This document shows, in pieces, positions 19,501-58,907 of a stretch of DNA of 64,000 nucleotides (within the stretch, counting starts at the first letter, position 1; each line of letters starts with the position of its first letter). Source of the DNA: Ophelia neglecta (taxonomy: Eukaryota); the NCBI GenBank assembly GCA_965285935.1, contig OZ260667.1, positions 10,850,001-10,914,000 on the forward strand, given 5' to 3'. The notes under the pieces were generated by a model. The model ran no database searches. It had not been told where the DNA came from and worked only from the letters and a program-made list of their open reading frames with translations. The position numbers and the translations under genes are program-made.

Positions 19501-19817
19501 GAGACAAACTCTCATGTTGTCTATATGCCTGAACCGTAAAATGTACCATATTGATGATAGCAGTATGTTTCCCAGGTAATGACACTACTTCTCAAAGCCC
19601 AGATCTGAGTAGTACGGCTTCTGAGCTTACTAGCGGGAGTAGCTCGCCGGGAGGTGGCACCACTCCTGGGCAGGATGTCCACGCCATCTGGGAGGAGTAC
19701 AAGACACTAATCATTGTGGGCTCAGTCATCACGTTCTTGTTGTTGGTCATCATCGTAATTATGTGTATTTACTGTTGTAAACTTAGAAGTGCCCACCATG
19801 GTTATGAACGCATATAA
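7588..19817 (+). CDS. Multicopper oxidase (laccase-like) gene A, 15 exons, type I membrane protein, 891 aa
   Basis: join(7588..7849,8920..9020,11018..11163,11564..12193,12361..12494,13550..13674,14579..14740,15237..15361,15734..15864,16089..16144,16831..16957,17522..17606,17837..18015,18302..18472,19576..19817) = 2676 nt, all introns GT-AG, phases consistent. Signal peptide [17 protein letters not shown]; INGQFPGP; SIHWHG; GTFWYHSH; HPIHLHGH; [21 protein letters not shown]; TM helix [22 protein letters not shown]; tail [14 protein letters not shown]. Confidence 0.93.
8487..8647. mobile_element. Tc1/mariner MITE family 1 copy (gene A intron 1)
   Basis: TA|CAGTAGAACCTGCCTTAAAGAC...CACAGGTTTCACTT|TA; matches 612-789. 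Confidence 0.75.
9645..10123. mobile_element. TIR-bounded element carrying a 22-bp tandem array (gene A intron 2)
   Basis: About 15 copies of AGCCTTATTCCGCGCAGTAAGT (9678-10020). Left end ccagggtaac...gcgcatagtctaattccgcgcag is an imperfect inverted repeat of the right end ctgcggggagtttaactatgcgccaaattacccgg. Confidence 0.6.
10385..10715. repeat. Degenerate G-rich tandem repeat (ttttggaggtgggg...gtagtagggctagctatat)
   Basis: About 6 imperfect units of roughly 50 bp. Confidence 0.75.
12750..12987. mobile_element. PIF/Harbinger-like MITE with CWG TSD (gene A intron 5)
   Basis: CAG|GGCCCGGTTT...AAACCGGGCC|CAG. Confidence 0.65.
13240..13416. mobile_element. Tc1/mariner MITE related to family 2, inverted (gene A intron 5)
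   Basis: TA|CAGTAAAACT...AGTTTTACTG|TA; internal TGTCC repeats. Confidence 0.72.
13870..14525. repeat. 32-bp minisatellite TGTAAAACCTCCATTGGGCCAATACTTGACCA (gene A intron 6)
   Basis: About 20 units, period 32. Confidence 0.95.
16300..16510. repeat. 42-bp tandem repeat containing TTATTCCGCGCAG
   Basis: About 5 units, period 42; shares its core with the 22-bp array at 9678. Confidence 0.85.
17031..17390 (+). mobile_element. Helentron/HINE-like fragment followed by a tRNA-derived SINE-like segment (gene A intron 11)
   Basis: ttaccttt...gattatgttttt...(TGTC)-like microsatellite...gataact is a HINE-like layout; B-box-like GGTTCAAATTCC at 17251. Colinear second copy at 18890-19200. Confidence 0.5.
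18890..19200 (+). mobile_element. Second copy of the HINE-like + SINE-like composite (gene A intron 14)
   Basis: ctttgctcaggcgagcaaagattatgttt...; GGCTTCAAATCCC at 19063; ends aagagggtgc like 17379-17388. Confidence 0.5.
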
Positions 19818-21440
19818 CACATTGAACTACTAGACGACCGTGGCGCCACGACGGGGGTAGTACGGGAATTATCTAATACACTGTAATATAGTAACTTGGT
19901 GTCATTTCAACGCATGTGCACTTTGATATGTGAAAATGGCGTAATACCCGAAGACAATGAGGACGATGCCGTGGCTGAAATGTTTTGATGTAATGTGTCC
20001 TCTAAAAATAGCCACAAATAAATTGTCAATGCAAGTTAATGAAAAATATATTTTCGATTAACAAATGAAATATTAACGAACAATAAACTTTATAACGTAT
20101 AAATGATATATTCAAGGAACAGACCAGCGTTTGCAGTAGGCCAATACATTACCGGCCGATAGAGAATTTAACACTTTCCGTCGCTGAATAAACAGTAAAC
20201 TGTATAAATATTTAATACTCTATGAGCTGCGGACCAGGGCTAAAGGCACAAGCTGCTGGCACCAGCAAAAACTAGATTTTGAAGGAAGAAAAAATGCGCA
20301 ACATTTTTTGCATACATAAAAAGTTTTCAATGGACGCTGTATTCTCTTCTTATTAATGCTTATTAATAATAGTATTATTATTATTTTGTTGCCCCCGGTA
20401 AATATATATAACTCTTTATTATATATTAACCAAGTTAAGAGCCGTTAAACAAGAATTTTTGTAAATTTAACTTATTTTATTCCTGCAGAATTTGCTTGTT
20501 ATTTAAATAAATATATATACATATTTATTTCATATGCATGGTGAGTTTACTTCCAAATAAAGTCTGTTTTTGTTGTCCTTGTGTCATACAAAGAGTTTCT
20601 TCAGTCTAAATATTTCAATAGTACGAATGTTTTTAGTCTGTTCTTGCCCTTAATACGAATATAAAATTTATTGGTTCTTGTCTTTAAAACGAGTGTAGAA
20701 TTTTATGGGTACGAGTATTTTCCCAACACTTTCGTACCTCATTGACGCCGTACGAAGCAGAGAGCGGGGGGGGGGGGGGGGGTCGGTGTACATGCAAAGG
20801 GAATTCTGTTATAATTTGCATGTAGTTATAGATTTCACTGTTTAAAACAAAGCTTCCAAATGAAGTAGAAGATGAAAATTGATCAGACGTTGTTGATGAT
20901 ATACCGATAGGCATACCAATGAAATTTTAAGTGGGACCATAATATTTCGGCAAAATTAATGATATAGACAAATATTACTAAACTATTTAAAAATAATTTA
21001 ATTAAAAATCAATAAAAAATCTGAGTCTATTTGTTTCTAGCCAAATTCTTTAAGATGGGCTATGAAACTAAAGATAATCTTTAACATTAAAATCTGGACA
21101 AGGCACTTCTGCGCACCAGTTGAGAGCATTCCTAATCGATTTTCTATGCCGTTTGAGAGGCACAGAGTCGGAAGATGCTATCAGATTTTATTACCTCAGC
21201 ATTGTGATGAATTAACATTAAAAATGTCCAAATTAAGTAGAAGGCAGGCTGATAGGGAGAATTTATTAACAACAGCGTCTGCTTTACACAACCACTACTT
21301 CTCCTGTTCACCGTACAAGTCACAGTGTAGAGGAAGACTACCGTTATCGGTAACAAAGAACTGACCTGACCTGACCTTTATATACTAGTCATAATTAGTG
21401 GAGAGGGGGAGGCTGCTGTCCTCCGTCAGTGTCATCTGTC

Positions 21441-21701
21441 ATGTTTCACTGGCAAGTATAACTGACAATGGCGCTAGGTGTCGCTAACGCATTAAAGCAG
21501 GAAGTGCTGGCCCAATGCGGCCCGGATCAGACTGTCTGTGAATATGAATGAAAGGTGACCAAAGGAGAGACCACGATACAATTCGACCCCATGCCCGGAA
21601 AGGGGTCCCCGTTTACCGGGACACGTCGGCAGGAAATGACGTGTTTGTCGCCAGGGATGCCAATCACGCCGGCAACGAGACTTCCCGTCTCACTGACGAA
21701 G
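21441..21701 (+). pseudogene. Pseudogenised MCO exon 1
   Basis: ATG TTT CAC TGG aligns with exon 1 of A/B/C. In-frame TAA (21459) and TGA (21549, Trp->stop), 1-nt deletion near 21600 (261 vs 262 nt), conserved Cys lost; GT donor retained at 21702. Confidence 0.92.
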
Positions 21702-23777
21702 GTCAGTTTCCCTAACTAATGAAAGTTAGTCTTTAGAAAAATATTGTTGTTAAAGAAAGAAAGAACGTTTTTGTGTGTGATGACATCGGTGTTAATAAGC
21801 GCCTCCAAGGTGTTTTACACAGCTGTCATCGCTCGCAAAACATCCTTTCTTTACAACCAACAAGTTTGTTTAGACCGCCTGCACTAATGAGGCAAGATCG
21901 GCAGAGCAAATGTATTAATCGCTAGTACTCGTTTACAAGGAAAGTAATTATGGAATTGAGTTCAAGATTATTCTCTTTTTCAACGTGACATTAAGACAAA
22001 ATAATTAACTTTTTAATGCTTTCTTAACTTCAAAGTACACTGATCAATTGATCGAGCGAGCAGGCGATTATCAGAATAGGAAGATAGAATGTTAGTGATA
22101 AGTTTAGTAAGTTCAAACATAGAAGGCATGTCTAATCAAACTATATAGCAACTCCCACCACGCAGGGAAATGAGCCAGTTCTTTCTTTTGCAAAACGTCA
22201 ATAGTTCGAGGCAAAACCTTTGACATTATTAAATCACACAATGAAACCTGATATATATTTTAGTTTTTGGCCATTTCAAACCTCACTTTAGAGCCTGTGT
22301 ACTAACAATTTTTTTTGAGTACATTTCACGGAAGTTTAGAGCTGGTCCTAAATACAATTAACACAAATGCAAAAGGCTGATTTTTGGAAAAAGTAAATAT
22401 AAACAGCAGAGCTATATTTTTCGGCTTAAAGCTATTGTTCTCATGCCAAAAGTTTGTCTATTAAAAAAAGTTCAATATTTTCCCAAAAACTAACAACTGG
22501 AATTAACATCACAATAAATACAAATATCTAGACCCAAAATAAACATAATTTTTAATATGCCGTAAGCGGAATCTAAGAAAATACCTTTTCTATGAAAGAG
22601 CAGCCCAACCTAAACAAGGTGCCAAGTAGGTAAACGAGGTACTATAAAACCACTCATTTTTTCGACTATTACTGTTCATGTTTACTACATCTTGTCAGTT
22701 TCGCCAGACATGTATAAACCCAGAGATAGGAATCGAGGCACTCGGCCGCAAGGAGATAACCGCGTTATTCATATGCTAATGAGCTGCGAATCAGGTCGCA
22801 CATGCGCAGAAGTGTACGGGCAAGCCAATTTGTAAACAAACTACGAGAAAGCCCCAGCAATGTGGAATAGCCGCAAAAAAACGTGTTTATTGTATATTTC
22901 ATTCAAGGATAACGATTGAAAATTGAAAATTACTCATCTTTAATGCACCGGGAAACACTTTTGACAGGAGTCTTGTTGATTAATGCCGACAAGCCACGAT
23001 ATAAAGAGGTTTCATCGTTACAAATGTCCACTGGCAGCAACCTGGCAAGCACGTGGTGTTAATGTCAGACCGATACCGATACATTAAGGGTCAAAATGGG
23101 ACACTATGAGGAGCATTTTGGTCTATTTGTACAGTATTAATCAATACTAGCTGTTCAAAGTAGTCATAAAACACATATTCATTACACAAAATTAAATTTT
23201 GACCGAACATTTAACAGAAGAATTATAATTTTCCAAAAGCCCGCGTAATGCCTGGATCTGCGAGGCTATCGCTGAAGATATATTTGGGAAAATAACGTCA
23301 TCAACGCATGCCACTCAACTAATAATCCTACGTACCGATTCTCTGTACTAAAATATTTAAAATAATGCTACATTTACCGTCTCATGTGGTATAAAACGCC
23401 GACTAAGCCAATCTATTTCTGTTTGTGTTTGGTGACCGCTGTTCATTCGGCTTCTTCTTTGTGAACACAATGGCGGCCCTCGAAAAATTCGCGCACAAAA
23501 TCCCACGTACAGCGTGAGCTCGTGTACGGGTAACCTATTACCATTTGCGTTATATAAACTATATTAACTATGTAACTATGTACCTTAGGACTTGTGGATA
23601 GCCTTTGGTTATGGTTCGTGACGACAGCATGACAGATATTCCCTACTACAGTGACATCCTTACCTATGATTCTGTTGCGCTCCCATTGTGCTGCCTATAG
23701 ACAGTCTTATATAGAGAGCAGGGTCATCTGTGTCCTCAGGAGGTGGGCTAGCTAGGGATGGGTTGTCATCTGCGGAT

Positions 23778-24084: not shown

Positions 24085-24253
24085 TTTACATACAGCCTGA
24101 TTTATCCTTCAAATAGATAAAAACAATTTAATAAACTTACCTCCAGCTGATCACCGATACATGGTAAACGGCAGCTGGTCCGAAACAAAGACCTAACATG
24201 GTGATGCTCTGTGGTTTCACTTGTGATTGCGACTAGTTACTGTTAAGTACAGT

Positions 24254-28580: not shown

Positions 28581-29129
28581 TGTGTAGTTTATATCTACAT
28601 GTACATGTATGTGCAGTTGAAGCCATTGACATCGCATCGTAGCGAAATTGCCCTTTGACTGCTGTTAAATTGGAGTAAAATCTTGGATTTTATTTTGTCT
28701 GTAAGCTGTTTTATATGCTGATGTGAATAACATCACTTTTAACTGCGATCATCCGTCATATCAATCGGAAATGTTGATGAAAATGATGAATTATTGGCTA
28801 GAACAGACGCTGTTATGATTCAATCAATGGCCCTTAAATCTCGCAGCCGAATATCGCGAAACCCCGTTCAAATCTCGCAGGGCCATGGCCAGCCAGAAAT
28901 ACTACTTGCTGCGAATCTATGTATTCTCTATATCTATGGTTTATTCAACTCTTAGAAAGATACGTTCGCTTCGCCCACTTTATGCGAACCCCTTGGTCCC
29001 CTACAAGCAATTTCTCGCCTCATCAACCCCTCCCATATTACCCCCCCCCCCCCCACGAATAATAAAAGGCAGGTTATTTGGGAATAATGAACAATGTATT
29101 AAATTATTAAATTATAATATTTCTTTCAG

Positions 29130-29433
29130 GTGGTTGTCCGTTTGACTAATGCGTTGCTGTCGGATGGTGTGACTATTCACTGGCACGGTATTCACCAGAG
29201 AGGGACCCCCTGGATGGACGGTGTGGCCGGCATCACGCAATGTCCCATCAACCCCAGTGAGACCTTCACATACAGGTACTATACTACTAGTACAACTACT
29301 AACAAATACTATACTACTAGTACACCTACTTACTAATACTATACTACTAGTACAAGGTACGGATGCCGTGGATGGACGGTGTGGCGGGTGTCACACAATG
29401 TCCCATTAACCCCATTGTAACAGTTACCTACAG
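29130..29433 (+). pseudogene. Orphan MCO exon 3 (29130-29275, intact) followed by a second partial exon 3 copy (~29356-29433)
   Basis: [49 protein letters not shown] with AG/GT sites. After TACTA repeats comes a half copy, [26 protein letters not shown]. No exon 2 or exons 4-15 seen nearby. Confidence 0.88.
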
Positions 29434-30823: not shown

Positions 30824-33800
30824 ATGTTTCACTGGGTTTTACTACTGACAATGGCGCTAGTTGTCGCTAGCGCATTTGAACAGGAGGTGCTGCCCCACTG
30901 CGGCCCTGAGGAGAGGGTATGCGAGTTTAAATGGGAGGTGAGCCAACGAGAGACCATGGTACAATACAACACAGTGACTGGTACAGCACGACCCGTTTAC
31001 CGGGACACATCGACAGGAAATGACGTGTTTGTCGCAAGGGATGCTATAATTGGCTGTAATGACACCTCCACCCTTAATGACGAAGGTGAGTTGTCCTCAC
31101 AAATGAGGCGAGATCGGCATATCAAATGTGTTTATCACTAGTATTAGGACAGAATTGAATTAGAGATCGTACTTTCTAAAGAAGTGATATTCAGATATTA
31201 GATCTGGTTCGTATGTACTTAGCACTCCAAACCACACACGTCAAGTGTAATGCTAAAGTGGCGAGCATCTGGTTTGAATTAACCATTATTTAGCAGTATG
31301 TGAATTAAAAGGTTAATGGATATTTAAGTAAAGTAATATGAATATAGGTAACACCTAGATTGGCGGGCTTAGCCTTCATTAAGGACTGCATGGGTGCAGT
31401 CTTTATGAAATGCTTACAATTCTGCCCTAATAACTCAAAATAATCTAAAACGTTAGAACCGGACGCACACTTTCAAACCTATAGAAATCTGTTTCATAAT
31501 TGAAAATAGCAAGCGGTTTAAGTTCATATTTGACATTGGCAATTTCTTTATTACGTGATGATGAGTTATTATTACACGTCTAACAAATATCGGCTTCATT
31601 ATCGCCGATTCTGGCCAGTTATTACCACCTGGCCGGCCGAACATAATGGACCGCTCATAACGGACTGCTATAATTGACTGCTATAATGGACCTCAAAGTT
31701 CGTCTCACTGCCGCCAGGTGGACATTGTCAGAGCCGGCTGGCTTGAGAGATCATCGAACTACTTGACACTCGCATACTACTTACGCCACCCTCGTAAAAG
31801 TTCTCATGCTTTGCAATGGCCCGAGCTTTAAAACAAAGCATAGTGGACTGTTGGCTTTAAACTTGTGAACTTTTGGCTTTAAAAAAGTGGACTAACGGCT
31901 GTCAAATAGTGGACTATTGGCCTTAAAGTAGTGGACGAGCGGCTATTAATAAAACCAGGAGATTCTGAAGAAGAATGAATGGTAAGAACTTTTACAAGGG
32001 TTGCGTAAGTAGTAAGTAAAGACTCGTGCCATTACAAAGCATTCAAACTTTTATGTCGGGCTTAACTTTTTACACCATGTATTAAGATCCACTTATTTTA
32101 GTGGCTCTCAATACATTACATACATCATATGTATGTGATTTATAACTGAATGTAATTCTAGTTGCTGAAATACTTCAAATCTGCTGTGCATCCTTATCGC
32201 ACCTATATAACTTTGTACCTTATAAAACCCGACCAAATCTAGCTCACGTAATACCGACAAGCTTCAGCAATTGTATAGGGCCTCTATGTCAGAGATTTTT
32301 GTTAATTATAAATAATTTTAAAGTGTAGTGATATAGCTTAAGTCGTGGAATAAAATATATTGGGCTTGAGCTGATAGGTCGACACATTACTTCCATCAGA
32401 AGATAGGACCAGAAAAAAATAAGAGCCCAGTTTATATAATTGTGGATAAAACATGCTTTTACAAATATATTGTGAGGACGAAATGGTTTGAGACGACATC
32501 AGAATGGGATCCGAATAGGAGAATTTCATCGAGATAGAATGACGCAATATCCTATGGCCGAAATGTGGTTGTTATTACAAACACACGATGCTGACCAGTA
32601 ATAACTGGAAATATTGTAGAAGTGTAATGAATATACAATAACATCTGTAAATCAAGACCACCAAAGGGCCTGGAAAATACTGGTCTTATTTTGGAGGTGG
32701 TCTGTTTAAACAGGTTATTTCCCTTTGAAATTATACAGCAACAGCTTCATATTGGTGGTTTGAATTAACAGGTGGTCTGATTATAGAGGTGGTCTTTCAG
32801 GCAGGTTTCACTGTAATGACATATAAAGTGCGGTATTACATGACAAAAGTAGTTCTCCAAAACACATAAACCTGGGGTAGAGTTGTGGAAAGTTGGAGAC
32901 TTTAAGTTTCGAGTCAAATCAGTAAATAGCAATGGGGTTTTCACACGTCCTTTCCCTCGAGTTGTTTCCGAGAAACGTACCTGTGAAATCTAAGTAATGA
33001 TCGTCCAATTAACATAATTCAATATTTTCTCAAGTCATGTAAACAAACCATATCATACTCGGTAATATTTTTTTATTATTTCGTTTTGTATTATTATTAA
33101 CTTTTATATCGAAAAAATTGTTAACACGTTAATATATGTCAATTAAGTTTCTATTATATCGAGCAGTATACATGTAATATGAAAGTCGTGCATATTAATT
33201 GACTTTGTCCACCATGTTAATGAGTATATTGATTGTTAGTCGGTTCCCTATTCTCTTGAGTTTGTTGAGATGTATTTCATGTTGTACTTTGATCCACCAT
33301 AAAACAAAAGTAAAGTCCGCAGTTGCTATTCAAGCCTGGCTATTCCACATATGAAGTTACAAAATCACCTCAAGAGGGCGTATGTTTTCTGTGGCACTGA
33401 CCTATTTTTTAACATTTTTATGTGTGTATAGATTTGGAGGAGATTGCCACGGCTGACGGACGGTATAAGGTTGTTTACACCATCAACGGCCAGTTCCCGG
33501 GGCCCAACATGGTCGTCTATGAGGGGCAACAGGTTAGAATCTTTGTAAAGTTTAAACTTCGCACAGAATTATGGGAACATTTTTATATCTTGGTCCATGC
33601 AAGTTGGAAATAGCGCTTGTGATTGGTAGATCATGGTTAGATGTGCTTTCGGTTTCAACATTGAAAAGATTTTCAATTTCGTATTTGCTATGTTGAAATT
33701 AGCAAATTTACCAACGATGACACAAGTATCAAATTATTAAATTTCTTTCAGGTGGTTGTCCGTTTGACTAATGCGTTGCTCTCGGAGGGTGTGACTATTC

Positions 33801-34647
33801 ACTGGCACGGTATTCACCAGAGAGGGACGCCCTGGATGGACGGGGTGGCGGGCATCACGCAGTGTCCCATCAACCCCAGTGAAACCTTCACATACAGGTA
33901 CTATACTACTAGTACAGCTACTTACAAATACTATACTACTAGTACAAGCAGATACAGTAACTATACTACTAGTACTACACTTACTTACAATTTATTTTCA
34001 AGTAGTACGTCTACATACACATCCTACACTATTAGCACCTCAACTAGATAACTAACATACATGTATAGTACGATTAGTGTATTAACATGCAAGTACCACA
34101 ATGCCAGAAGGTTGTAACTGTGCTACACCACAATAAATATGCCTCATGACAAAGACGGTTGAACGGAAAAAATTAGCCCCGTGGACCGAACTTAAGATAT
34201 AGAACATGACACGGAATATTAACCAAACCCATGCAATGGTATTTAAATCAAAAAGAACACATTCGCCCCAGAAAATTGACCTCAAGATAAAAGGTCAGAC
34301 CATCGTCAGGCGTCGACATTCATTTGTCGCTCGGTCAAAGGGAAACGCTTGCAGTTTTCTTATTATTTTTTATGAATAGTATAAATATGTCAAAATCTTG
34401 TCTTGATTTTGTTTTGAGTTTCATTCGAAATACAATATGGCCGCCAGGACGACAAAACCATTGTTTCGTTTATGTCGCACAATAAAAAAAATGGTAGCAG
34501 TTGTTATCATTTTGATATTTTTGGCACTAGAATATAACATCTCATCTGGGATTGTTTTTGAGAAACTTCGAAACGTATTTTGTTGTCATGGCCACAGATA
34601 TAGAAAGTAAATCATGTGATCCGAATTTTCAAAGCCCCTGTATTATT

Positions 34648-34729
<82 letters not shown>

Positions 34730-40700: not shown

Positions 40701-43700
40701 TTAATTTTGTATAGGCGTATATTCGTTTAAAGTCTTGTTTGTAATTTTTTGCAAGGCATACCTTTACCTTAACCCGCATCTTTCACACATTACAGTTATT
40801 TGGGGAGTTGTTTCCGCCGTTCAGATGCGACGAGTGTTTAGAAAACCACTGTAAATGTACTCATCACATCGAGCTCACGCTTAACAAAGTGATTCAACTG
40901 GTTTTCGTGAACACTGGTAAGTCACATTCTTATTTTACCGATATGTGATGGGATAAAGAGACGTGCTCCACACTAATTTGACATGAAAACCAGCTATTGC
41001 AGGACTGATACTCTAGTTTTCACGATCGTATTATTTCATTAGGATCTGCATCGAAATGTACGGCTCAGATTTTGTTTTAACCTCACAATATATTAATAGA
41101 TTCAAGAAAATCACTACATCCAATACATCTCCATGGACACCATTTCTACGTCACAAAGGTCGGCTACCCCAATGTAGACCCCCTTACAAGGTATGTGATA
41201 AATATGGTGAAATTTAGGCCTCATTTTGTTTAATTTTAGTAGCCTATGGATTAAACACTATTTTCGTGTTTTTTAATGTCATGTTAGGCGACTTAGAATG
41301 AATGAATGACTGTATTTGTTGCATTATTAACAGTTGTAATCACATACAACAGGGCGGTCCTGTCGCTGAATAGAAACGTAACATGTAACGGGCCTCGTTG
41401 TGAGTGGACCAATCCGGACTGGTCTGACGGACGTGTGCCGGATATGAACCTGGAGAATCCTCCTCTCAAGGACACAGTGATGGTCCCGGGAAACGGATAT
41501 GTCGTCGTCAGATTCAAGGCGGACAATCCAGGTTGGTGGCGAGGGCGCGAAATATTTGCCCTTTTTTAAAAATTCAATTTTCAGAAAGAAATTGATAGGG
41601 GATTCTGGACGTAGTGAGACAGAATAAAGCAAAATGGGATGTTAAGCTGGTTGTAAAACGTACAAATATACCGTCATTTAAATGATAGGATTTATATGTT
41701 AACTTTTACAAAGACTCTAAACGTATTAAAAAATAAAAATAAAATCACAGTCAAACAATGTTATTACAAGAAACCTGATGTATAATAATAAGCAAATGTT
41801 TGATACTCTTTCGTGGTCCTGCCGAAATATGTGACAAATTTAGCGTATCATTCGAATTGACCAATTCTATAAATATTTAGTAGAGACCACTGACGTTAGG
41901 TGGCGGTGATATTGGTCTTAGCATCCAACCGCTATGGATCATCTTTTTGGATAGAGGAGATCACTAGCACTGCGTGTGTACACTAAATTTAATATTAGAG
42001 AGACGTCCCCAGGTATTGTGCGGAGGCAGGGATGAGTGTCGGTTTTTCGCGGATAAATAATCGGTTATTTTTTCCAGGTTGGTGGGTGCTGCACTGTCAC
42101 ATGGAGTTCCATCAGGCCCTCGGGATGATGTTAGTAATGAGAGAAGGAGGTGCCCAGCACCAGAACCCTCCTCCCCGTGACTTCCCTACCTGCGGCTCCT
42201 TCGACTGGAGTGAACAGCAGTTCTGGGAGACGATTAGTCCCGGGGGTGAGTTTCTGGATTATGGAAACAATGTTCTACATACATTCATATATCATTGAAA
42301 TTGACAGCCATAATTAATAAATGCATATTTTACAGCTTTCGGCGGTGGAGGGGGGGGGGGCTTTATATTTTTTTTCCTTGTCGAAGGTTTCTATTTATAA
42401 ATAACTTATGTCAATAGAAGGGAAAGCTAGGAATCCTTTACAGCACGGTAACTTTTGAGTGTGCCATACTTAAATTTTCCTGGAATACAGTTAAACCCCG
42501 GCTACACCTCGTGGACAGGCCAGACTACTTTCCTTGAAAACCCGCTACACTTGGAACCTGATAAAACCGTATTTGCTAAATTATAATTTCCTGATGGGTC
42601 CGAAAATCGCTGACGTAAAATGTCTTTTTAATGTATTTTCTAGTAGATATGCTTGATTGATGTGATCCATTAAACGTCAGAGCCTATGTGCGTCATAAAC
42701 ACGTAGACATTTGATTGTGAGATGGTGCCTTATGTTAGGGACTGTTTGCCCTTTATTTCCTATTCTGACAACTATAAATATCTACCTCAATCAAATGATG
42801 GATTGTTCATGAATCGTATTCAATAATCTGTATTGACATTTGCTCTCCGGTCTTCTGAGACTACAGCAATATAGCTCATATTCATAGATAGGGGAACACT
42901 AGGCATGAAAGGTGCTGACAATATTTAAGATCAGTGAAACTGGAAACCAGATGAGTTAGACATGAAATTAATAAAAGTCTTGCACAGTAAGATAAAAATT
43001 ATGTTGAGGAAACACCCATTTTTCATTTTTGTTGTTTTCCTAGTACAGTATAGTGTTAGAACGCTCGTTGGCTGATGGTTTTGTAATAAGGCTGCTTTTG
43101 AGTAATCTACTATTTCATGCATTTGTCAAAACATATTTTCATATTGTTACAAAGACCAATATGACAAGTTAAACCAAACAAACTATTAGAAGTTGAAGGC
43201 TAAAGCTTTCGGAATTACGGTAATGTCAGGTGGGGTCTTGGGACATCAACAAGGTTGGCAGCCATGTTTACAGACGACATTGGAGTGAAATTCACACTGC
43301 AGTTGGAAATTTACGGAATACAAATTATATGAAGACTGATGTTCTTAGAAAATTGTAAATTTCAGAAGCATATATATTAAAGAATAAAGGCCAGGTGCAG
43401 AATACTTGGTACAAGCAACTTTTATATAAAAACAACACCAGTCAAAGTACCGGTAGGATCGCCCGCAAATTTCTACGTGTTTTTGAAGCCAGTGTTCTCT
43501 GACTATAACAATATGTTCAGAGATTTCGGGCTACTTTTTTTGCCCGACCCATCGTTGTCTTCAGAGCGGTTACAATGGAACAGCTCTTATTTGCAGGTAC
43601 AAGCTGTTATTCACTACTGCTATTCACAATACACCGCTTCTCGCTGGGGTGGTTTCCAAACACAGCATCAATTGCTCTAGGATACTGCTAGAGCAATTGA

Positions 43701-44266
43701 TACTCTAGCAGAAGCTCTAGAGCTAGTGGTTTCCTACTAGCTCTAGGATACTACTCATGCTGGGGCATGGAATGTTTGTACTCTATGTTTTTTTAAATCT
43801 GTTTCCTCACGCATACTGTGTAAATAAATGACGCCAACCTTAAAGGTTTTACAGCACCTACATATCTCAACCTGCCCTGTTCCGGTCAAATTCACTCAGA
43901 GAGCCAATGTTACGAAGCTCCTGTTAGGGGTTAACTGCACTATCCAATTGCTCCTAAACCACCTCAGATAGTGGCAAGAGTTCTCCCTCATCCATATCCA
44001 TACATAATGTGCTTGGGCCATGTCATCTGCAAGTCTATAATATGACTTTACAACCCTCAGGTGGAAGCAGCACCTCCCCTAGCGGGAATAAGAAGTCGGG
44101 AGGTGGCAGCACCTCCAGGCAAGGCATCCAAGCCACATGGGACGAGCATAAAGTACTGATCATTGTGGGATCCGTCATCACCTTCTTGTTGTTGGTCATC
44201 GTCGTAATTCTCGTTGTTTTATGTTGTAAACTTACAAATAGTCGTCATGGCTACCAACGTTTATAG
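30824..44266 (+). CDS. Multicopper oxidase (laccase-like) gene B, 15 exons, type I membrane protein, 749 aa
   Basis: join(30824..31085,33432..33532,33752..33897,35401..35649,36157..36290,36722..36846,37074..37241,38217..38326,39461..39594,39899..39954,40796..40916,41100..41190,41353..41531,42078..42245,44061..44266) = 2250 nt, GT-AG, same phases as gene A. Motifs [34 protein letters not shown]; TM helix and tail [14 protein letters not shown]. Confidence 0.93.
32636..32813. mobile_element. Tc1/mariner MITE family 1 copy, inverted (gene B intron 1)
   Basis: Reverse complement of 612-789; ends GCAGGTTTCACTG|TA. Confidence 0.72.
34641..34726. repeat. (ATT)n microsatellite
   Basis: Visible directly in the sequence. 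Confidence 0.97.
36444..36540. repeat. 32-bp x3 tandem repeat
   Basis: ATAATTTAGAACTCTACGTATATATGTGAATA, period 32. Confidence 0.92.
37200..37666 (+). repeat. 61-62-bp minisatellite derived from the gene B exon 7 / intron 7 junction
   Basis: Unit atcattgaggcagtcacactagacctaccccagcagggacaa|gtaagc...; GT donors at 37242, 37303, 37365, 37426, 37488 and 37549. Confidence 0.92.
38349..38526. mobile_element. hAT-like MITE (gene B intron 8)
   Basis: Termini CAGTGCCGGATT / CCTGGACCCGCCACTG with subterminal G and C runs; TSD not clean. Confidence 0.55.
38882..39398. repeat. 29-bp minisatellite CTTAAAACATGTACGTATGTCCAGCATGT (gene B intron 8)
   Basis: About 18 units. Confidence 0.95.
40049..40374 (-). 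mobile_element. Same tRNA-derived SINE family, antisense in gene B intron 10
   Basis: Reverse strand reads TGGCCGAGTGG (A box)...GGTTCAAATCC (B box); body matches 5831-6162; (CAAC)n tail. Confidence 0.85.
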
Positions 44267-47039: not shown

Positions 47040-50000
47040 ATGATCCGTTCGGCGGTGTTGGTGACACTGGTGCTTGGTGGCACCTTCGCATTTGAGCAGG
47101 AAGTGCTGCCCCATTGCGGCCCAGACGAGACTGTCTGTGAGTTCAAATGGAAGGTGACCAAAGGAGAGACCATGATACAATACGACACCATGACCGGTAG
47201 AGCGCGACCCGTTTACCGGGACACATCGACCGGAAATGACGTGTATGTCGCCAGGAATGCCAAAGGTAGCTGCAACGAGACCTCCCCTCTCAGTGACGAA
47301 GGTGAGTTGTCCCCAGTAGTCTGAAATAACGAGACCTCCCCTCTCAGTGGCGAATTTGAGTTGTCCTCACTAGCCTTAAATATTGAGACCTCCCCTCTCA
47401 GTGGCGAAGGTGAGTTATCATCAATAGTCTTAAATAACGAGACCTCCCCTCTCGGTGGCGAAGGTGAGTTTTCCTCATTCGTCCCTACGAGGGATCGGTT
47501 TTTATTGCACTTTTTACTTTGAATCCCTACCCTCAATCGGAATAAAAAGGGCCCCTTCCGTGCGAGGGACTTTGTATTCTTTATACCATTAATCGACTTC
47601 ATTTATTATTTTTATAGAGTTAGAGAAGATTGCCACGGCTGACGGACGGTATAGAACCGCCTACTTTATCAACGGTCAGTTCCCGGGGCCCAACCTGGTC
47701 GTTTTCCAGGGGCAACAGGTAAGAAGTTAGAGAGTGTGTGTGTGTGAAGAGAGAGAGGGAGGGACGGGGGGGGGGGGGGTGAGGGAGGGAGGGAGAGGAG
47801 AGATGGGGGGTAGGGTTACAGGTCTTACCTTGTTGTGTTATTAATCCTCCCTTGTGCTGGCAAAGCATTTTCACACCAGAATCAATACCGGCAGCTCAAA
47901 CATCCTTGATATTCAGTTGTATATAGAATATTGGCAAAAGTTTTATCGATTAATTGGTTGCCAAATAGATCGAAGAAGCTCTGACGTCAGCTGCGCGTCA
48001 GAGCGTGGCAACGACCTGACAACGGGCTTCTGTGGGTATACACAGTTTTTTCAAGATGGCGGTGATAAGCGTTTCGTGTATAGCGGCGTTCTTTGCCGGC
48101 GAAGAAAAACTGATTAAGAAAAGGAAAAATGCGTACAAGTCTAAGCGATTAGAAAGATTTACCTATGATGGTTCGCGTGCATCACATTTCAGCTCGGGTC
48201 AAAGCCAGCTTCGTACGAAAGAACGGCAAGTTTGTCCTACCGTGTGCGTAAGATCTTAAATCCCCCATATTTACGCCTGTTCGCTAAACGGCTTATTTTT
48301 TATTGGGACCAGTACTAGTGGTGTATAAGGACTTTACAAGTCATGTTATGTATAAGTAATAATATTGGGGCCTTATTATTTCAGAAAATTGGGTGTCAAA
48401 TTGTTTATGTAAGTGTATTAATGAATTGCAATGTCACAATGGTAATGTGTGAATTTCTGACCAGGGTTCTTGTAATTAATTGCACAAGCGTAGTCATGCA
48501 AATGTGACATGAGGAGGATGCACTAAATCTAAATTGCCTACCCAATTGCAATTTCATAAAACCTATTTTCTCATAGACTTACATGTATTAAGCTTTTAAT
48601 ATTAAATAATGTCTCGCAGCTTGTCCTCACAGGTAGGAAACCGAATAAATCGGCAGATCTCTCGCTGGCTTCGGTGGTTGCAGAAGGGCGGAAAACACTG
48701 CACAAATGCTATAATCACCTTAATCAGAGCTTTCGGTTTCCACAAATGTAGAAATCAGTCAGAATCACGCATAAATACTGGACTAAAACACAAAATCATC
48801 GGAGCTGATATTACGACCGTGTACTTTAACATGTACCCAACATGGCGGCAATGATTGTTTGTCTCCAGCGGGAGCAGTAACTAACAATATCACGTGATAA
48901 ATGACGTCATCCTTCTTCAATCTATTGTTTCAGGTGGTTGTCCGTTTGACTAATGCGTTGCTGTCGGAGGGTGTGTCTGTTCACTGGCACGGTATTCACC
49001 AGAGAGGAACCCCCTGGATGGACGGGGTGGCGGGTGTCACGCAGTGTCCCATCAACCCCAGTGAAACCTTCACATACAGGTCATTTTTACTACAACATTA
49101 ACATACAGTCGCTATCTTNNNNNNNNNNNNNNNNNNNNNNNNNNNNNNNNNNNNNNNNNNNNNNNNNNNNNNNNNNNNNNNNNNNNNNNNNNNNNNNNNN
49201 NNNNNNNNNNNNNNNNNNNNNNNNNNNNNNNNNNNNNNNNNNNNNNNNNNNNNNNNNNNNNNNNNAAGATCAGAGACAGAGACAGAGAGACAGAGAGACA
49301 GAGAGAAAGATAGAGAGAGCCGTTTATGATAAATAATCATTCACGATAAAGATGACAATAAGAAAAAACTGCGGGACCCAATAATAAAGCATTCCACAGA
49401 GACAGATACCTACAAGGACAATCTTATTTCAAAATAGTTGTTTTTTTTTGTTTTTTTTTATTACTTCCAGGTTCCTTGTCAATGAAGCCGGTACTTTTTG
49501 GTATCATTCCCACCTAGGCCTGCAGAGAACAGACGGGTTGTTTGGGTTCTTAGTCGTTTTACCGCGCACGTCCCCGCACCCTGAACCAAACCTCTCCGGC
49601 ACGCGCTCCCCTCAGCTCCCACCAAGGCCGGCCTTTGACAAGGATTATCTCCTTATGGTGCACGACTGGTTCGGCAGGGAGTCGTCTGTGGTAAACGACA
49701 TGTCTTATCAAGGCCTAGTCAGGTAAGCAGGACTTAATAATTCTACGTAAAACATTCTATATGTACGATTTGATTATTTACCCCTTTCCAGCAAAGCCAA
49801 TAGCAAGCAGCGAGACGCTCGTATATGTTGTTACAATATCAATGCGTTTTCCTCCCGTCTCCCTGTGATTGGTTTAATTTAATCTCACCTTGTTTGTATG
49901 TTTTTAGGTATTGGTCTAGCTATGGTAACCCCTCCTCCCGCCTCCCTGTGATTGGTTTGATTTAAACCCACCTTGTTTGTGTTGTTTTCAGGTATTGGTC

Positions 50001-53000
50001 TAGCTATGGTAACCCCTCCTCCCGCCTCCCTGTGATTGGTTTGATTTAAACCCACCTTGTTTGTGTTGTTTTCAGGTATTGGTCTGGCTATGATAACCTC
50101 TTCTCCTGTTATAGCCCCACTCTCGGCGTTTATCACTCAGAATTAGGCTCTGTACCGTTCGAGACCGCTCTCATCAACGGCAAGGGATCCACCCGCTCGC
50201 TCAAAGATCGTGAGTAAATGTTACGTGCCTCGGATATCATAGGACCCATGTGTTAAGCAAACTGTAAGGCACCTTTAATAGATAAGTTGCTAATTTGTCT
50301 TATTGTAGTTTCTTAACAAGTCAACCTAAATCCTTGCTATGATAGCCTCACCTCCGGTCACCCTATGATTGGTTTGATTTAAACACACCTTGTCATAGCC
50401 CCTTCTGTCTCTTATTCGTTGACACTATAGGGATTTACCCCCCTTCCATTGGGATAGCGTCCGGGGTGGGGGAGGGGGGGGGGTCCATCTTTGGGAGGTT
50501 TAGAAACAAACTTATTGCTATGGCTGGGAATTTCTTGATCCGCCATTTCGTCTATGTTTATGGTTTCTAACTGTTTGCACTATTAGATTCGATACATTCT
50601 CCAGAAGCCTTTCGTTTAGAGCCACTTCTTTCTACGCCACCTTTGTCGGTGTATCCATACCTAGAACTCCATTCTGAATCAAATTACTGAGTTATTACGA
50701 ACATGTTCAACACAGAATGCATGATATCCCATAAGGCTTTAGCCGAAAGCTTGAAATCTAATTCATTTTGCCTAATTTAAGACAGAACTCAATAAATGGA
50801 TTGGGTTTGAATGATTAAATGGGTAATACTTTTGAACGTAGCCGAGTTGTCACACTTTTCTGATTTATGTTCCAGTGATAGCTGTTGCCGATACGAAAAC
50901 ACCAAATATGGAAAGATTCCGAGTTCGCAGGGGTGGAATATACAGGTTCCGGGTCATCAACCCCTCGCTTAACTTCGCCTTCCAAATCAACTTTGGCGGG
51001 GTGAGAATGGCTTGATATCTCCATCTGGCGGAAGATGATGGCATTATTATCTTCCCTCTAACCAGTCTGTTACGCATCTTATAGTTATTTATACTTTCAA
51101 GCAGTTTAACACAGTGTTTAAATTGCAGTTTTGAAACTTTTTTGAAATGAAAATGGCAATTCAAGGGATTCTTTTTGTAACAAAAATGTTTTTATTGTTC
51201 TATATATACCCAGCTGTGTTTTCTTGCTAAACGTTATGGTTCATGTTTCACGGATTTTCCGATATTATAGCTCTTTTATGAGGCATTTGTTCTGTTTCTC
51301 GCCAGCACAAGCTGCACGTGATATCGTTAGACAGTGTAGACATCGAGGAGATAGAGGCCGACTTCGTTATAGTCAACCCGGGAGAGAGACTTGACTTGTA
51401 CCTGGTGGCCGACCAGGACCCAGCCGCCTACATCATACAGGCTGCCACCCTAGAACTCCCCCAGCAGGGACATGTAAACCGCCCTAGTCTCTTGATTACT
51501 GGCTAACTTAATGATAAAATATTAACATCATTAAACTGCCTAATGTAATTTTGTTGTTTAAACTGCAGAATATCGTATATTTTCGCGCCAGATGGAGGCA
51601 TATTCCGCGGACATTGTAACAGTACGTTGTGCGTGGAAGATGGCTACTTGCTGGACCTTATTAAACGACGAACGAATGTACCCAATTATACCTTATAGCA
51701 GAGTTAATTGCGTTATTGCACCACACCACAAATTGATTGGCTTAAAATTCCAGTAAAATGGGGACTGGATACGAAACCGTTTTTTTTTCTGAGGGTTACT
51801 AAGTCGCCGCGGCGAGATACTAACTCGCCGCGGCGAGACAAATAACTCGCCGCGTAACTCGTTGCGGCGAAATACTATCTCCCGCGGCGAAATACTAACT
51901 CGCCGCGGGGAGATACTAACTCCCAGCGTAACTCAACGCGGCGAGATACTATCCGCCGCGGCGAGTTTATCTCCGTTCTGAATGTCCTTAAAACGCTCTT
52001 GTACCAAAACCCATCAATATTTACTGACTCCAGTCAAAAACGTTAGTCTCCAACCTTCCAGAACTGCACCCCTGGTATATTTACAAGCCTAAGTAACGCT
52101 ACCTTTTTACCACTCAGTCTGTTTATAGGCTATAGACTATAGTAGAATTGTGTTCCAGTGCTATATTTTGCAACAAACCTCGCAGTATTTTAAAAGTATT
52201 TTAAAAGTCTTAGTCTTTATATTTAGGATAATGTTCCTATTACATATTCTAACGTCAACCGGAATGAAGAATTTGAGGAAGATACTACAATATTCCAATC
52301 GTCGATCACAAATTAAGAGGCTGCTCCCATTTTATTGAGATCAGCCTCCTACTATTTCACTCATCAATCTTGATATTTGAAAATGTTCTCATTGTATATA
52401 ATTATAGTTTTACCATATATAGGCCTATTCCTGAATTAATGCGGCGATCTATTGTAACCCTATCTATTGTAATTACAGGGAAAAATCCTTTGTGATAACT
52501 GGAATTTTCTAGAAATCCATGTTACAATTGTTCCCTGCATAACACCGACCTTTTAGGATTTCAGAAGTCGATAACTTAATGTTGACACCGACAACTGAAT
52601 AATTTTTACATTTCCGATTGGTAACCGAAATAGATCAAGGTCTGAATTATTGTGAAACAGGTCTCTCATTTCTAACGGCCAAACCTTCCCACTGCCTACC
52701 GTCCCCACTCCCACTTCAACCTTCAGACCGCCCATACAGTCCCACTTTTCCTCTTGCAGCCCCCAAACGCGGTGTACGGAGCTTTGTGGTACGAAGAAGA
52801 TCGATCCTTCAACTATATACCCGGGGACCCGTGTCAGCCACCATGCGTTGTTGTTAACTGTCCTTTTGAGTAAGTATGATGACTACATTGTATAAATGAA
52901 AACACCAAACATACAACAAACACGTATTGGTGTGTTCTTCTTTCAGACAGTTTCCTAGTACTGGCCCCGCCTTTGTATGTCGTAACCTTGAGAGTATGCA

Positions 53001-56000
53001 GGGGTCAGGATCCCATCACCAAGGACCAGATTCCGGCGGCAATGTTTATGAACACTTCCTTAACTTCCACCACAATGTTGGTATGTCAGTTCACAATGTC
53101 CAAAAGTTCTAATATACAGTTAAACCTGGGAATCTAGACCACCAAATGGGACTGGAAAATACTAGTCTGATTTTGAAGGTGATCTGTTTAGAAAGATTAT
53201 TTAACATTGATAGTTTACAAAATGGGTCTTCACATAAGTTGTCTGTATTGACAGTAGATTTGACTATGGAGGTGTTCTTTAAGCCAGGTTCTACCGTGTC
53301 ACTCCTTCATTTTGATAATCTAATCAGTCCCTAACATAAATAGCCATTTTCGGATGCCATAACTATCACCACGCAGCCTTGCAGAAATCAAAACTATATA
53401 GAGAAAGCGTATGATTTTGGAAAGGGGGGTGGGGGTGCTCTCTCTTGTTGGCAGTTGGATGTACATGTATATCTCCTCCCAGAGGTGGATTTAACCGATG
53501 TTAGGGTAACACAGATCCCTTATTCTCAATGCTAAACGCTGTCGGCAGTACTCTTATTGAAAGATAATACTAAATTGTTTCCTCCTCCAAATAGATGGCC
53601 GTCAAGTCATCAACGGTATACAGTTTGTGTTGCCGGACAAGCCTCCTCAGGTTAGTACATTTTTTTACTTGGGTGATAGGTAAGTTGTCCTCTGGTTAGT
53701 ACACTCTTTTACAGGGGTAGTAGGTCAGTTGTCCTCAAGTTAGTATAATCTTTTACAGGGGTGGTTGGTAAGTAGTCATCGGGTTAATGATAGCTTTTAC
53801 AGTGGTGGTAGATTAGTTGTCCTCAAGTTAGTGATATCTTTTACAGGCTTGGTAGGTTAGTTGTCCTCGGGTTAGTGATAGCTTTAACATGGGTGGTAGG
53901 AAAAAATTGGTGATAGGCCAAAATCTTTAAAATCATTGAGTTTTATATAAATAAACAAGCTCGAAAGCAGCCTTAATTTCATAATTGTAACTTGCTGTGA
54001 TAAACATAGTGACTTTTGTTATTTCAAGGGTTTACATTCCTGTATAGTTGTCTGTAGTTAGCTGCCCAATCCTGCGTGTACGATTCCGAAGCAAGCTTAC
54101 TGGTGGTTTTTCAAAACACCGCTTTGCTTCTCAGTGTAATTATTTCTTTGCCAAATTTCTTTCTAAATAAAATTCCAAGAGTATCTATTTACCAATAGAC
54201 AATAAAGTCTTAGGAGGTAAAGGGTATGACTCGTAACATGTGCTTTTAACAGTTTTAACCCTACTGTTTATTTGCCCTCGTACAGTTATCAGGAGAGAAT
54301 CACGTGGTTTCGCCGTTTAAGTGCGCCTCTAACGTGTGTCTAGAAAACAACTGTAAATGTACCCACCAAATAGACCTCCCGCTTAACAAAATGATTCAAT
54401 TGGTTCTCGTCAATACCGGTAAGTCACGTGGTTAATTAACTGAATTGTTATAGGATGAGCGATGTCACGTGCTCTACACTGATGTGAGAAATAATAAAGA
54501 AATGTCATTATCTGTTAATTCTCGACAAGAAGTCATTCAAATGCTGCTTTAAGTGGGTATGATACCTAATTTTATGATTTAAATTGATACTCCTTATAAT
54601 CATATGATAATTATACATAGATGCAGGAAAAATGTTACATCCGATACATGTGCATGGACACCATTTCTACGTCACAAAGATCGGCTACCCGTCTGTAGAC
54701 CCCACGACAAGGTTAGTCATAGTTATGGTCAAAATGTGAAGCGCAATGATATGGAACAGACAACTGTAAAATATTTGAAACATCATGTTTTGGCTACTGT
54801 ATTTGGACGCCCTTTTAGCTTTGGGGGCAGTGTTATCTTGGTACTATCCGAAATGACACAATGGATAGCAAATTTTAGAAGAAATACTTCTAAATGGTGT
54901 TTCTTCTTCCGGAGAAATAACACATGATTCCTTTTGACAAACTTGGTCCTACGAGTCGGAGAAACATCCAACTCCTGCGTGTGTGTAATTTATATGTTAG
55001 TATTTGGCACATTATCAATGGTCGTAATCACATAGGGTGTGTCATGTTGAAACACAAATTAATACATGCCCTCGAGCTTCTATCAAATTGCCAACTCAGG
55101 CTGGGAAAATCACATTTTCATCAATATTCAAAACAAGTAAGGTCGGGCTATGCAATCTAACGATATAAGCAGACGCCTTTATCGCTTCGAGACCGCCTGA
55201 ATAAGATTGGTGTGTTTCGGGTACCTTTTAAAGATGCAGCGACATATTTGATTTGGGCCTAAGGTTAAATTCCTTTGTCTGTGACCACCTTGTACACAGA
55301 CTGGACTTGTTTCACTTGTTTCAAAGTTGTGTGAACTATACCAGTTTTTTACTACAATGTCATTTACCCGCCCTTTTCAACAGAGAGGTTCTGAATGATA
55401 ACGTGACGTGTAACGGGCCTCGTTGTGAGTGGACCAATCCGGAGTGGTCTGACGGACGCATCCCTGAAATGAACCTGGTGAACTCTCCACTCAAGGACAC
55501 CGTACTAGTGCCAGCCAATGGCTATGTCGTCATCAGGTTCATGGCGGACAATCCAGGTTCGTGGAAATTACGGATATGGCAAACTTACGATTAAACACTT
55601 GGGAATTATACACTTCATCACACATCAACCACTGGGTAGAAATAAGCCCATCACACCAATGAACATAAATATAATGTCGTATCCAAGGATTCATTGATGA
55701 CCTTAAAAGTGTCCTTGTACAGTACCTATACACGCTACAATTTGTTCAGTGGCTTGCGGTGCAGTGCCACATTGCCAAGACAATAATTTGTTTTTCGCTA
55801 ATAGGAAATCGTATATGAGGAACTTAATGGTTACCTTTAACTTGACCCAAATGTTCATGGTCACGTGAGGTCTGTCGTGGCTCAATTAACGGTGGTTAAT
55901 ATAGGTGAAACGACTGACCAGCTCATTCAAGTCATGTGAATGCTAACCTTGACTTGGTCTTTGACTTAATCTTCTATGTTGTACTGGCCAAATTGAGTTG

Positions 56001-57292
56001 TCAGTTATAATTGCATAGGCGTTAAACTGTCTCAAAGAGAATGGTCGACATTTAAATGTATCCCCTAACACATGTTTTTATCATGTGGAAGACATTTATT
56101 TTTTACTGAATTCAGCTTGACAGGGCTTTTTTTTAACAATAAGGGCTGAGCTTTCATGTTTGCCACATTATATTTTTGATGTCAGCTGTTTATTTCAATT
56201 CAGCCAAGTAATGATTCAAATATTGCGGGTATGGTATGGCCTGGGCGTTTTATAACATTTTTATTTTTCATTTAGGTTGGTGGGCACTGCACTGCCACCT
56301 GGAGCTGCATCAGGCCGAGGGGATGATGTTAGTAATGAGAGAAGGACTTCCCCAGGACCAGAACCCTCCTCCCCGTGACTTCCCGACCTGCGGCTCCTTC
56401 GACTGGAGTGAACTACAGTTCTGGGAGAAGATACAACATTCTAGGAGTGAGTGCCTATATGATGTTACAATTATTCCCGCACATGCCTTACAATCTCAGG
56501 TACAATCCCAGCCATACTAACTGCAAGCCTGTCACAGGACGTCACTGCAGCGGCCGTTGGCGCCACCGTCTGGCACTGACTGTAATCCGCCATGGAGACG
56601 ATTGCCCCCCCCCCCCCCCAACATCACCTGCCCAGACCCAGGCCAGCACTTCTACTGTCTGCTTTACTCCTACAGAGTAGCGTCAGAGGGCAGACAGTTG
56701 GTCCACCTCCTGCCTCACCCCCCTCTCCGCAATTACCCCCCCCCCCCCTCCGCGAGTCGACCGCGACATCCGAGGAGCGTCCGAAGCATTCGGCAGGGAC
56801 CCCAATGAGTTGCGGTTATGAAAAAACACATTTAATAAAAGTACAAGCTTAATAAAGCTTGATTGAATATATTCTTTATATTTCCATAAGAACCATGACC
56901 CAGGTCAAAATGAGCTTAGAATGGTGACCGAGATACATTACGTTTATTTGTCCTCTCAATTGGTCATCACACATACATAATTTGGATTCGATTGATGATA
57001 AGGGCTGTCCTTGTCTGTTGTTTGTATTCTCAAAAGTAGATTCACCTAATTTATGATATATTTTTGTTACCTGTAATGCCCAGGTCGACAGAGAGCGCCA
57101 GTTATCGGACTTAACGTGTTGGGAGGTGTCACCACTGCGACGCCGGATATCAGCGCCCTCTGGGAGGACTATAAAGTACTGATCATCGTGGTCTCCGCCG
57201 TCACGCTCGTGTTGTTGGTTATCGTCGTCATACTTGGTGTTTATTGTTGTAAACTTACAAAGGCGCGTTCGGGCTATAAGCCTCTACGGTAA
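47040..57292 (+). CDS. Multicopper oxidase (laccase-like) gene C, 15 exons, type I membrane protein, 754 aa
   Basis: join(47040..47301,47618..47718,48934..49079,49471..49722,50076..50209,50876..51000,51306..51473,52760..52869,52947..53080,53595..53650,54286..54418,54621..54711,55384..55556,56276..56446,57084..57292) = 2265 nt, GT-AG. Motifs [34 protein letters not shown]. The last exon (absent from the ORF track) gives ...[45 protein letters not shown] gap in intron 3. Confidence 0.92.
47274..47478 (+). repeat. 54-bp x4 repeat derived from the gene C exon 1 donor junction
   Basis: aacgagacctcccctctcagtgRcgaag|gtgagtt; donor positions 47302, 47356 (mutated), 47410 and 47464. Confidence 0.92.
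49850..50100 (+). repeat. 84-bp x3 repeat derived from the gene C exon 5 acceptor junction
   Basis: ccttgtttgtgttgttttcag|gtattggtctRgctatg; exon starts at 49908, 49992 and 50076. Further partial copy at ~50335-50395. Confidence 0.92.
51796..51968. repeat. 21-bp tandem repeat with palindromic core CTCGCCGCGGCGAG
   Basis: About 8 units, ATACTAACTCGCCGCGGCGAG. Confidence 0.88.
53117..53296. mobile_element. Tc1/mariner MITE family 1 copy, inverted (gene C intron 9)
   Basis: TA|CAGTTAAACCTG...gactggaaaatactagtctga...CAGGTTCTACCG; same orientation as 32636. Confidence 0.7.
53644..53900 (+). repeat. 44-bp x6 repeat starting at the gene C exon 10 donor
   Basis: tcctcag|gttagtac...ttttacaggggtggtaggttagttg repeated. 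Confidence 0.85.
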
Positions 57293-58890: not shown

Positions 58891-58907
58891 ATGCTCTTCT
58901 TTTTTAG

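Follow-up and report, generated by a model that had tools for sequence, protein, structure and literature searches.

GYxxPhi (Phi, a hydrophobic residue) is the consensus recognized by the mu subunits of the adaptor protein (AP) complexes. It is found in the cytosolic tail of LAMP-1, where the motif and the residues upstream of it read RSHAGYQTI, and in that of CD63 (GYEVM). The YxxPhi signals of LAMP1 (C-terminal GYQTI), LAMP2 (YEQF) and CD63 are read by AP-1, AP-2 and AP-3 (PMC5297682, PMC6627992), and the TGN38 peptide YQRL has been crystallized with mu3A (PMC6627992). A tail of this kind is encoded three times in a 64,000-nucleotide stretch of the Ophelia neglecta genome (GenBank assembly GCA_965285935.1, contig OZ260667.1, forward-strand positions 10,850,001 to 10,914,000; hereafter the window), where it closes three tandem genes, A, B and C, for laccase-like multicopper oxidases (MCOs). 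Like those of LAMP-1, LAMP-2 and CD63, the tails of these genes are short and basic, follow a transmembrane (TM) helix and carry Gly-Tyr-x-x-hydrophobic at or near the C-terminus, with the Tyr 8–9 residues from the membrane. The end of the gene A tail and that of a paralog elsewhere in the genome (KRPAGYDRI) resemble the LAMP-1 tail, and YQRL of gene B is identical to the TGN38 peptide solved with mu3A. However, the luminal part is a copper oxidase and not a LAMP or tetraspanin fold; the likeness is one of signal, not of family.

Fet5p acts at the vacuole, the lysosome of yeast. Together with Fet3p and hephaestin, it belongs to the membrane-anchored MCOs (PMC11817551). These proteins resemble the window genes in that an MCO is carried on one C-terminal TM helix with the enzyme facing the outside or the lumen, but they work with an iron permease or exporter as partner, their Fe(II)-binding acidic residues are defined, and hephaestin has six domains. 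We know of no LAMP-type GYxxPhi signal in the sorting of Fet3p, Fet5p or hephaestin. Insect MCO1 is predicted to carry a glycosylphosphatidylinositol (GPI) anchor (PMC4593997), and C. elegans F21D5.3 is GPI-anchored and occurs in the plasma-membrane fraction (PMC12112694). Both come from animals and, like the window genes, combine a signal peptide and three MCO domains with a hydrophobic anchor at the C-terminus. As predicted GPI-anchored proteins they have no cytosolic tail, whereas the helix of the window genes is followed by 12–13 residues of basic character, so that these genes keep a cytosolic signal that would be impossible for a GPI protein. Tyrosinase is listed with AP-3 (PMC6627992). 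Tyrosinase and TYRP1 are type-I membrane copper oxidases with a short cytosolic AP-read signal to a lysosome-related organelle (LRO), the melanosome, as is proposed for the window proteins, but they are unrelated type-3 copper enzymes with a dileucine signal instead of YxxPhi, and the comparison is an analogy only. Oyster laccase marks a haemocyte subcluster and has been discussed for melanisation (PMC12064177). A literature search, incomplete in its full-text coverage, found no paper linking an MCO or laccase with YxxPhi or with a lysosomal or AP-3 signal. Membrane anchoring of MCOs is already known.

The three genes are collinear on the plus strand and comprise 15 conserved coding blocks each, as located by six-frame motif scans and tblastx between the paralogs. 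Gene A (7588–19817, 15 exons, ATG to TAA) was delimited by paralog tblastx blocks, exon open reading frames (ORFs), exon-wise Pfam and tblastn with the homologs P0011, P0047 and P0008. Its paralogs B (30824–44266) and C (47040–57292), which have the same 15 exons, were delimited by tblastx, exon ORFs and homolog tblastn. Exon-wise Pfam found three cupredoxin domains in order, Cu-oxidase_3 (PF07732) in exons 2–4, Cu-oxidase (PF00394) in exons 6–7 and Cu-oxidase_2 (PF07731) in exons 12–14, which bears out the original prediction that these are three-domain MCOs. The four copper-ligand motifs (HWHG, WYHSH, HPIH(L/V)HG and HCHxExHQAxGM) are complete in genes A, B and C, the type-1 site having an axial Met. 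In gene A, the HWHG motif lies in exon 3 (11018–11163; Cu-oxidase_3, E 1.6e-20), and exon 14 (18302–18472) carries the HCHxxxHxxxGM copper motif, a family-specific FPTCG motif and a phase-1 donor. Plant ascorbate oxidase 1AOZ and laccase 8R7I are the closest solved relatives by sequence. The N-termini, called from their hydropathy, are hydrophobic and signal-peptide-like in genes A, B (from 30824) and C (from 47040), with TSA, ASA or TFA directly before FEQEV; the predicted signal peptide of gene A has 17 residues (7588–7638, TSA then FEQ; h-region hydropathy 1.84). Exon 4 of gene A (11660–12060) also holds an in-frame Ser/Thr/Pro-rich, mucin-like insertion of about 135 residues, which may be coding in full or be spliced out in part, in the linker after WYHSH, where genes B and C have a short Pro-rich linker only.

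The last exon has one layout in all three genes. A Ser/Thr/Gly-rich stalk and a conserved W-(E/D)-(E/D)-(Y/H)-K are followed by a 25-residue TM helix ending in CC and by a basic cytosolic tail of 12 residues in A, 12 in B and 13 in C. Exon 15 of gene A (19576–19817) encodes the Ser/Thr-rich stalk, the TM helix (19704–19778), the tail (19779–19814) with GYERI (19800–19814), and the stop. The corresponding positions in gene B are 44061–44266 for exon 15, 44153–44227 for the helix, 44228–44263 for the tail and 44249–44263 for GYQRL. In gene C they are 57084–57292, 57176–57250, 57251–57289 and 57272–57286, respectively, the motif here being GYKPL followed by one R. The mean Kyte-Doolittle hydropathy of the helix is 2.87 in A, 3.39 in B and 3.14 in C. 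All three tails contain G-Y-x-x-(I/L) with the Tyr as the ninth residue after CC; the motif ends the protein in A and B and stands one residue short of the C-terminus in C. Across the three tails K, L, G, Y and the hydrophobic residue at +3 are identical or conserved, and the five spacer residues differ. A signal peptide, one helix and a positive-inside tail together predict that the oxidase is luminal or outside and the tail cytosolic. A GPI anchor was ruled out, as 12–13 residues with K, R and H follow the TM helix. Pfam searches with the tail exons returned sub-threshold matches to TM segments of unrelated families only, and no domain.

The donor of exon 14 is in the same place and in phase 1 in every gene (G/gtgagt in A and B, A/gtgagt in C; 42245/42246 in gene B and 56446/56447 in gene C). 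The exon 15 acceptor is a pyrimidine-rich cag, also in phase 1 (cccag/GT in gene A), and the junction codons are GGT, GGT and AGT. We infer that exon 14 is spliced to exon 15 in this animal, and the sequence logic supports this well. Between the paralogs, the segment coding for the TM helix and tail shows dS of 0.5–0.9 and dN/dS of 0.30–0.44; by this comparison the tail exon is under purifying selection. A relic of the tail exon lies downstream of gene C on the plus strand (58900–59130; E 3.9e-6, one internal TGA). It retains GYERI at 59112–59126 and has decayed through a 9-nt deletion, two 1-nt deletions and loss of the stop codon. The original prediction had described three genes ending in a TM helix, CC and a G-Y-x-x-hydrophobic tail, in which the G, the Y, the hydrophobic residue and their spacing are kept while the neighbours vary, together with the GYERI of the relic; these statements are confirmed, as are the fit of exon 15 to exon 14 and the formal likeness of the tail to LAMP-1 and CD63 (a Gly directly before the Tyr, a short distance from Tyr to membrane and a place at or next to the C-terminus).

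The window proteins are absent from the protein libraries searched, where the closest entries, about 45–50% identical, are Logan transcript P0216 and proteins of hemichordates, amphioxus and bivalves. Annotations in the family read laccase-like, L-ascorbate oxidase-like or ferroxidase, and its members occur in cnidarians, a brachiopod, annelids, molluscs, hemichordates and amphioxus; most of the relatives in the survey and in the tree described below are predicted models. The window genes were treated exon by exon, and the tree covers their relatives. When the C-termini of 295 non-redundant relatives were sorted by a crude hydropathy test, 98 had a TM helix plus tail, 31 were GPI-like and 166 were neither. 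Membrane anchoring, as predicted in this way, is common in this animal MCO family, and the premise of the original prediction that most three-domain laccases are secreted does not describe it. The lysosomal reading offered with that premise is kept in part: the conserved adaptor-type signal on an anchored MCO stands, and the secreted-laccase premise does not.

Many TM-anchored relatives have (G/N/A)YxxPhi soon after the helix. Examples are SAYTRI followed by the stop and SNYQQM in Glandiceps, GYQDM, NYQQL and NYKEV in Branchiostoma, GYHRI in Owenia, GYSKL in Paralvinella and GYVYL in Arenicola among the annelids, and GYQEI, GYHDI and GYQDI in Crassostrea and its relatives. The Glandiceps homolog P0199 ends in CCYCCLQYKHRSAYTRI and a stop, which equals the end of gene A in length and spacing; the two share a 17-residue layout of C-x-Y-C-C, seven variable residues, (G/A)-Y-x-R-I and the stop. 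In the Glandiceps genome, the TM helix and tail of P0199 also lie in a last exon of their own, although the intron position differs from that in the window genes. When 11 tails were aligned, Tyr was the one column without variation, the residue at +3 was hydrophobic in 11/11 and Gly stood at -1 in 8/11. At least one Cys is present at the cytosolic boundary in 43 of 69 TM-tailed rows, and at least two in 20. Logan contigs of 2.6–3.0 kb hold oxidase, helix and GY tail in one ORF of 788–807 residues (for example, 807 residues on 2616 nt), and from these lengths they must be transcripts. The laccase-like or L-ascorbate oxidase-like proteins of molluscs, annelids, hemichordates and amphioxus (P0199, P0163, P0211, P0225 and P0238) belong to the same MCO clade as the window genes and share with them an N-terminal Cys motif, FPTCG after the last copper site and the TM helix with a (G/N/A)YxxPhi tail. 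They differ in the variable length of the tail as well as by the degree of identity given above, and are known as uncharacterised database models. Conservation beyond the window, on which the original prediction had staked itself, was found in a deep paralog and in hemichordate (with identical spacing), amphioxus, annelid and bivalve homologs. Exon 14 has its closest database match in P0003, a 172-residue fragment from an ENA contig that is 64% identical; it shares the KISGSG boundary and then has a GPI-like hydrophobic end, which indicates that near relatives differ mainly in the last exon.

For statistical purposes, tails sharing at least 50% of their first 20 residues were collapsed, which left 83 non-redundant TM-anchored metazoan tails. 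GYxxPhi at tail positions 4–17 was counted in 11 of the 83, against 0.39 expected when each tail was shuffled (about 28-fold; none of 2000 shuffles reached the count), although this test is inflated by relatedness because shared ancestry is not fully removed. Any YxxPhi was present in 23 of the 83 tails against 8.3 expected, and Gly precedes the Tyr in 10 of these 23 motifs, whereas it makes up 4.9% of tail residues. A FastTree phylogeny, a quick tree with some long branches, was built from 144 non-redundant full-length proteins with everything beyond the last copper motif cut off. One clade of 60 rows (support 99), which includes P0216, contains all 10 rows with (G/N)YxxPhi and six of the eight rows with another juxtamembrane YxxPhi. 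The other 84 rows contain no (G/N)YxxPhi and two other YxxPhi (Fisher p 1e-4 and 1.5e-5). Chance occurrence of GYxxPhi was rejected on the shuffle enrichment and on this restriction to one clade. At least six changes of tail state are needed on the tree, which fits an old signal lost repeatedly and one gained repeatedly equally well. Among the insect and vertebrate MCOs met in the survey, the clade was not seen.

At least 21 MCO C-terminal exons are present in the O. neglecta genome. A search of this genome with the tail exon matched the three window genes and the relic only; it missed the diverged GYDRI paralog, which was found by reading downstream of its exon 14. This paralog belongs to the nearest other MCO cluster, which lies on the same chromosome about 8 Mb away (G000:C12:2816000-2886000, i.e. 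2.82–2.89 Mb) and consists of three genes on the minus strand (loci L031–L033). Their exon 14 is 57–59% identical to that of the window genes (57% between the GYDRI gene and gene A), and in each of the three a TM tail exon follows the same phase-1 intron (ccag/gtgaga and tcag/AT). One of them ends in a TM helix and RNKRPAGYDRI, a tail of 11 residues with the Tyr at position 8. The Pfam Lamp luminal domain (PF01299) had no match in the O. neglecta genome, and the controls were likewise without a match.

Taken as a whole, the GYxxPhi tail is probably a real, conserved sorting signal of the adaptor type on a membrane-anchored MCO. The proteins would be of type I: after cleavage of the signal peptide, a predicted competent three-domain oxidase would face the lumen or the outside, held by a short Ser/Thr/Gly-rich stalk and a single TM helix bordered by a Cys pair, and 12–13 residues would face the cytosol. 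The sole conserved and constrained cytosolic element, G-Y-x-x-(I/L) at or next to the C-terminus, would be bound by mu subunits of AP complexes. At steady state, the proteins may then reside at the limiting membrane of late endosomes, lysosomes or an LRO, with the oxidase acting in the lumen. By analogy with described tails, this residence is the favoured reading, with a probability of roughly 0.45. Lysosomal signals reportedly differ from purely endocytic ones by a Gly at -1, by a distance of 6–9 residues from the membrane and by a C-terminal position. These three features are shared by genes A and B, the GYDRI paralog and Glandiceps P0199, except that the residue at -1 is Ala in P0199, and lysosomal residence is favoured for this reason over an oxidase of the cell surface that only undergoes endocytosis or basolateral sorting. 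The juxtamembrane CC pair is a plausible palmitoylation site. We only infer residence in lysosomes or LROs, palmitoylation and a role, if any, in pigment, immunity or metal handling.

Several observations weigh against lysosomal residence. YxxPhi signals also serve simple endocytosis and sorting to the basolateral side. Many relatives depart from the LAMP geometry, with the motif 13–16 residues away from the membrane and an acidic stretch behind it. In gene C, position +2 of the motif is a Pro, and an Arg is added at the C-terminus. Both genes next to the GYDRI paralog encode tails of about 30 residues that lack YxxPhi and end in ISNPGFI and ISNPSAI, and the signal is therefore dispensable for some family members. 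The TM, GPI and signal-peptide calls, including the helix boundary, are simple hydropathy calls. A search of public runs met the locus in three DNA-type runs from one study and in no RNA run.

It is quite possible that the proteins are instead cell-surface oxidases, with YxxPhi serving basolateral delivery, AP-2 endocytic recycling or both. They would then be membrane-bound ascorbate, iron or phenol oxidases on the surface of epithelial or blood cells, in the manner of hephaestin, Fet3p and insect MCO1. Plasma-membrane-anchored MCOs are a known precedent (PMC11817551, PMC4593997, PMC12112694), YxxPhi is a general AP signal (PMC6627992), the geometry of the motif in the many relatives just mentioned, remote from the membrane and not C-terminal, is that of an endocytic signal, and amphioxus relatives are automatically named 'ferroxidase', although these labels are untested. 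In contrast, the tails of the window genes, the GYDRI paralog and P0199 are trimmed to 11–13 residues and carry Gly/Ala-Tyr at the C-terminus, 8–9 residues from the membrane; this is the lysosomal form as known from LAMP-1 and CD63. Moreover, the known animal surface MCOs cited have GPI-type ends and not such tails.

It is unlikely that exon 15 is optional or unused and that the main products are secreted laccases ending soon after exon 14, with the tail confined to a minor isoform. Read-through of the exon 14 donor of gene A meets a stop within about 13 codons, and secreted, GPI-like and TM ends alternate among close relatives; no RNA run was met for the locus. However, the consensus gtgagt donors and polypyrimidine-cag acceptors keep their phase throughout the three genes and likewise in the distant cluster, and the transcripts of relatives hold oxidase, TM helix and tail together. 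The tail exon is also constrained in the three genes, whereas the copy that is out of use, the relic, decayed quickly. Least probable is that G-Y-x-x-hydrophobic has no sorting role and reflects descent among recent paralogs and chance elsewhere: the motif is short, the three paralogs are few and relatedness remains in the shuffle control, but it has persisted through a deep paralog split and between phyla amid otherwise unalignable tail residues, Gly is over-represented before the Tyr and the motif is confined to one clade.

A wider form of lysosomal residence is more tentative and, on balance, doubtful: one old bilaterian clade of laccase-type enzymes may reside in lysosomes or LROs, addressed by a LAMP-type GYxxPhi tail, as a multicopper counterpart of melanosomal tyrosinase. 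Sequences of the clade occur in annelids, molluscs, hemichordates, amphioxus and this animal. Outside insects, animal laccase-type oxidases are almost unstudied and are annotated as secreted 'laccase' or 'ascorbate oxidase'. If lysosomal residence holds, a conserved adaptor-binding tail would place a four-electron oxygen-reducing oxidase inside an acidic organelle, with a bearing on pigment and quinone chemistry, metal handling and phagocyte killing in marine invertebrates. From the family survey also comes a comparison set from one clade, with secreted, GPI-like and TM-only ends beside those with TM plus GYxxPhi, which lends itself to following how an enzyme is re-addressed by its last exon. 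Being short and portable, the tail makes the sorting idea directly testable.

Two further relics lie between genes A and B on the plus strand. A relic of exon 1 with two in-frame stops (21399–21716) was found by paralog tblastx, and a relic of exon 3 with the HWHG motif (29118–29417) by motif scan, tblastx and homolog tblastn. An assembly gap (49119–49265) falls within intron 3 of gene C (49080–49470), whose borders are the exon 3 donor acatacag/gtcatt at 49079/49080 and the exon 4 acceptor ttacttccag/G at 49470/49471. In tblastn, an oyster homolog spans the gap without a missing stretch (residues 118–167, then 167–224), and in genes A and B exon 3 is followed directly by exon 4. An exon concealed by the gap was ruled out by this contiguous alignment. 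As the gap lies inside intron 3 and the homolog aligns contiguously, the coding sequence of gene C is neither interrupted nor shifted. Directly after the exon 3 donor of gene A is a 30-nt tandem repeat of 3.4 copies (11165–11266), whose in-frame read-through is YYTTST-like; the repeat likewise occurs in the corresponding introns of gene B and of the exon 3 relic. This repeat in intron 3 is probably the reason for the assembly break in gene C.

Downstream of the cluster, a 34-nt minisatellite of 22.6 copies with 91% match (60990–61755) accounts for a G+C-rich stretch. A Gly/Arg-rich repetitive open frame of 191 residues (3634–4209), which adjoins the N gap at 4311–4410 and has no Pfam match, is probably a simple repeat and not a gene. 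Three pairs of segments of about 200 nt, 60–88% alike and in opposite orientation (597–798/32627–32828, 5814–6056/40162–40404 and 14952–15147/43311–43506), sit in the flanks and introns of genes A and B. Since they match in all frames, they are likely to be short interspersed repeats.

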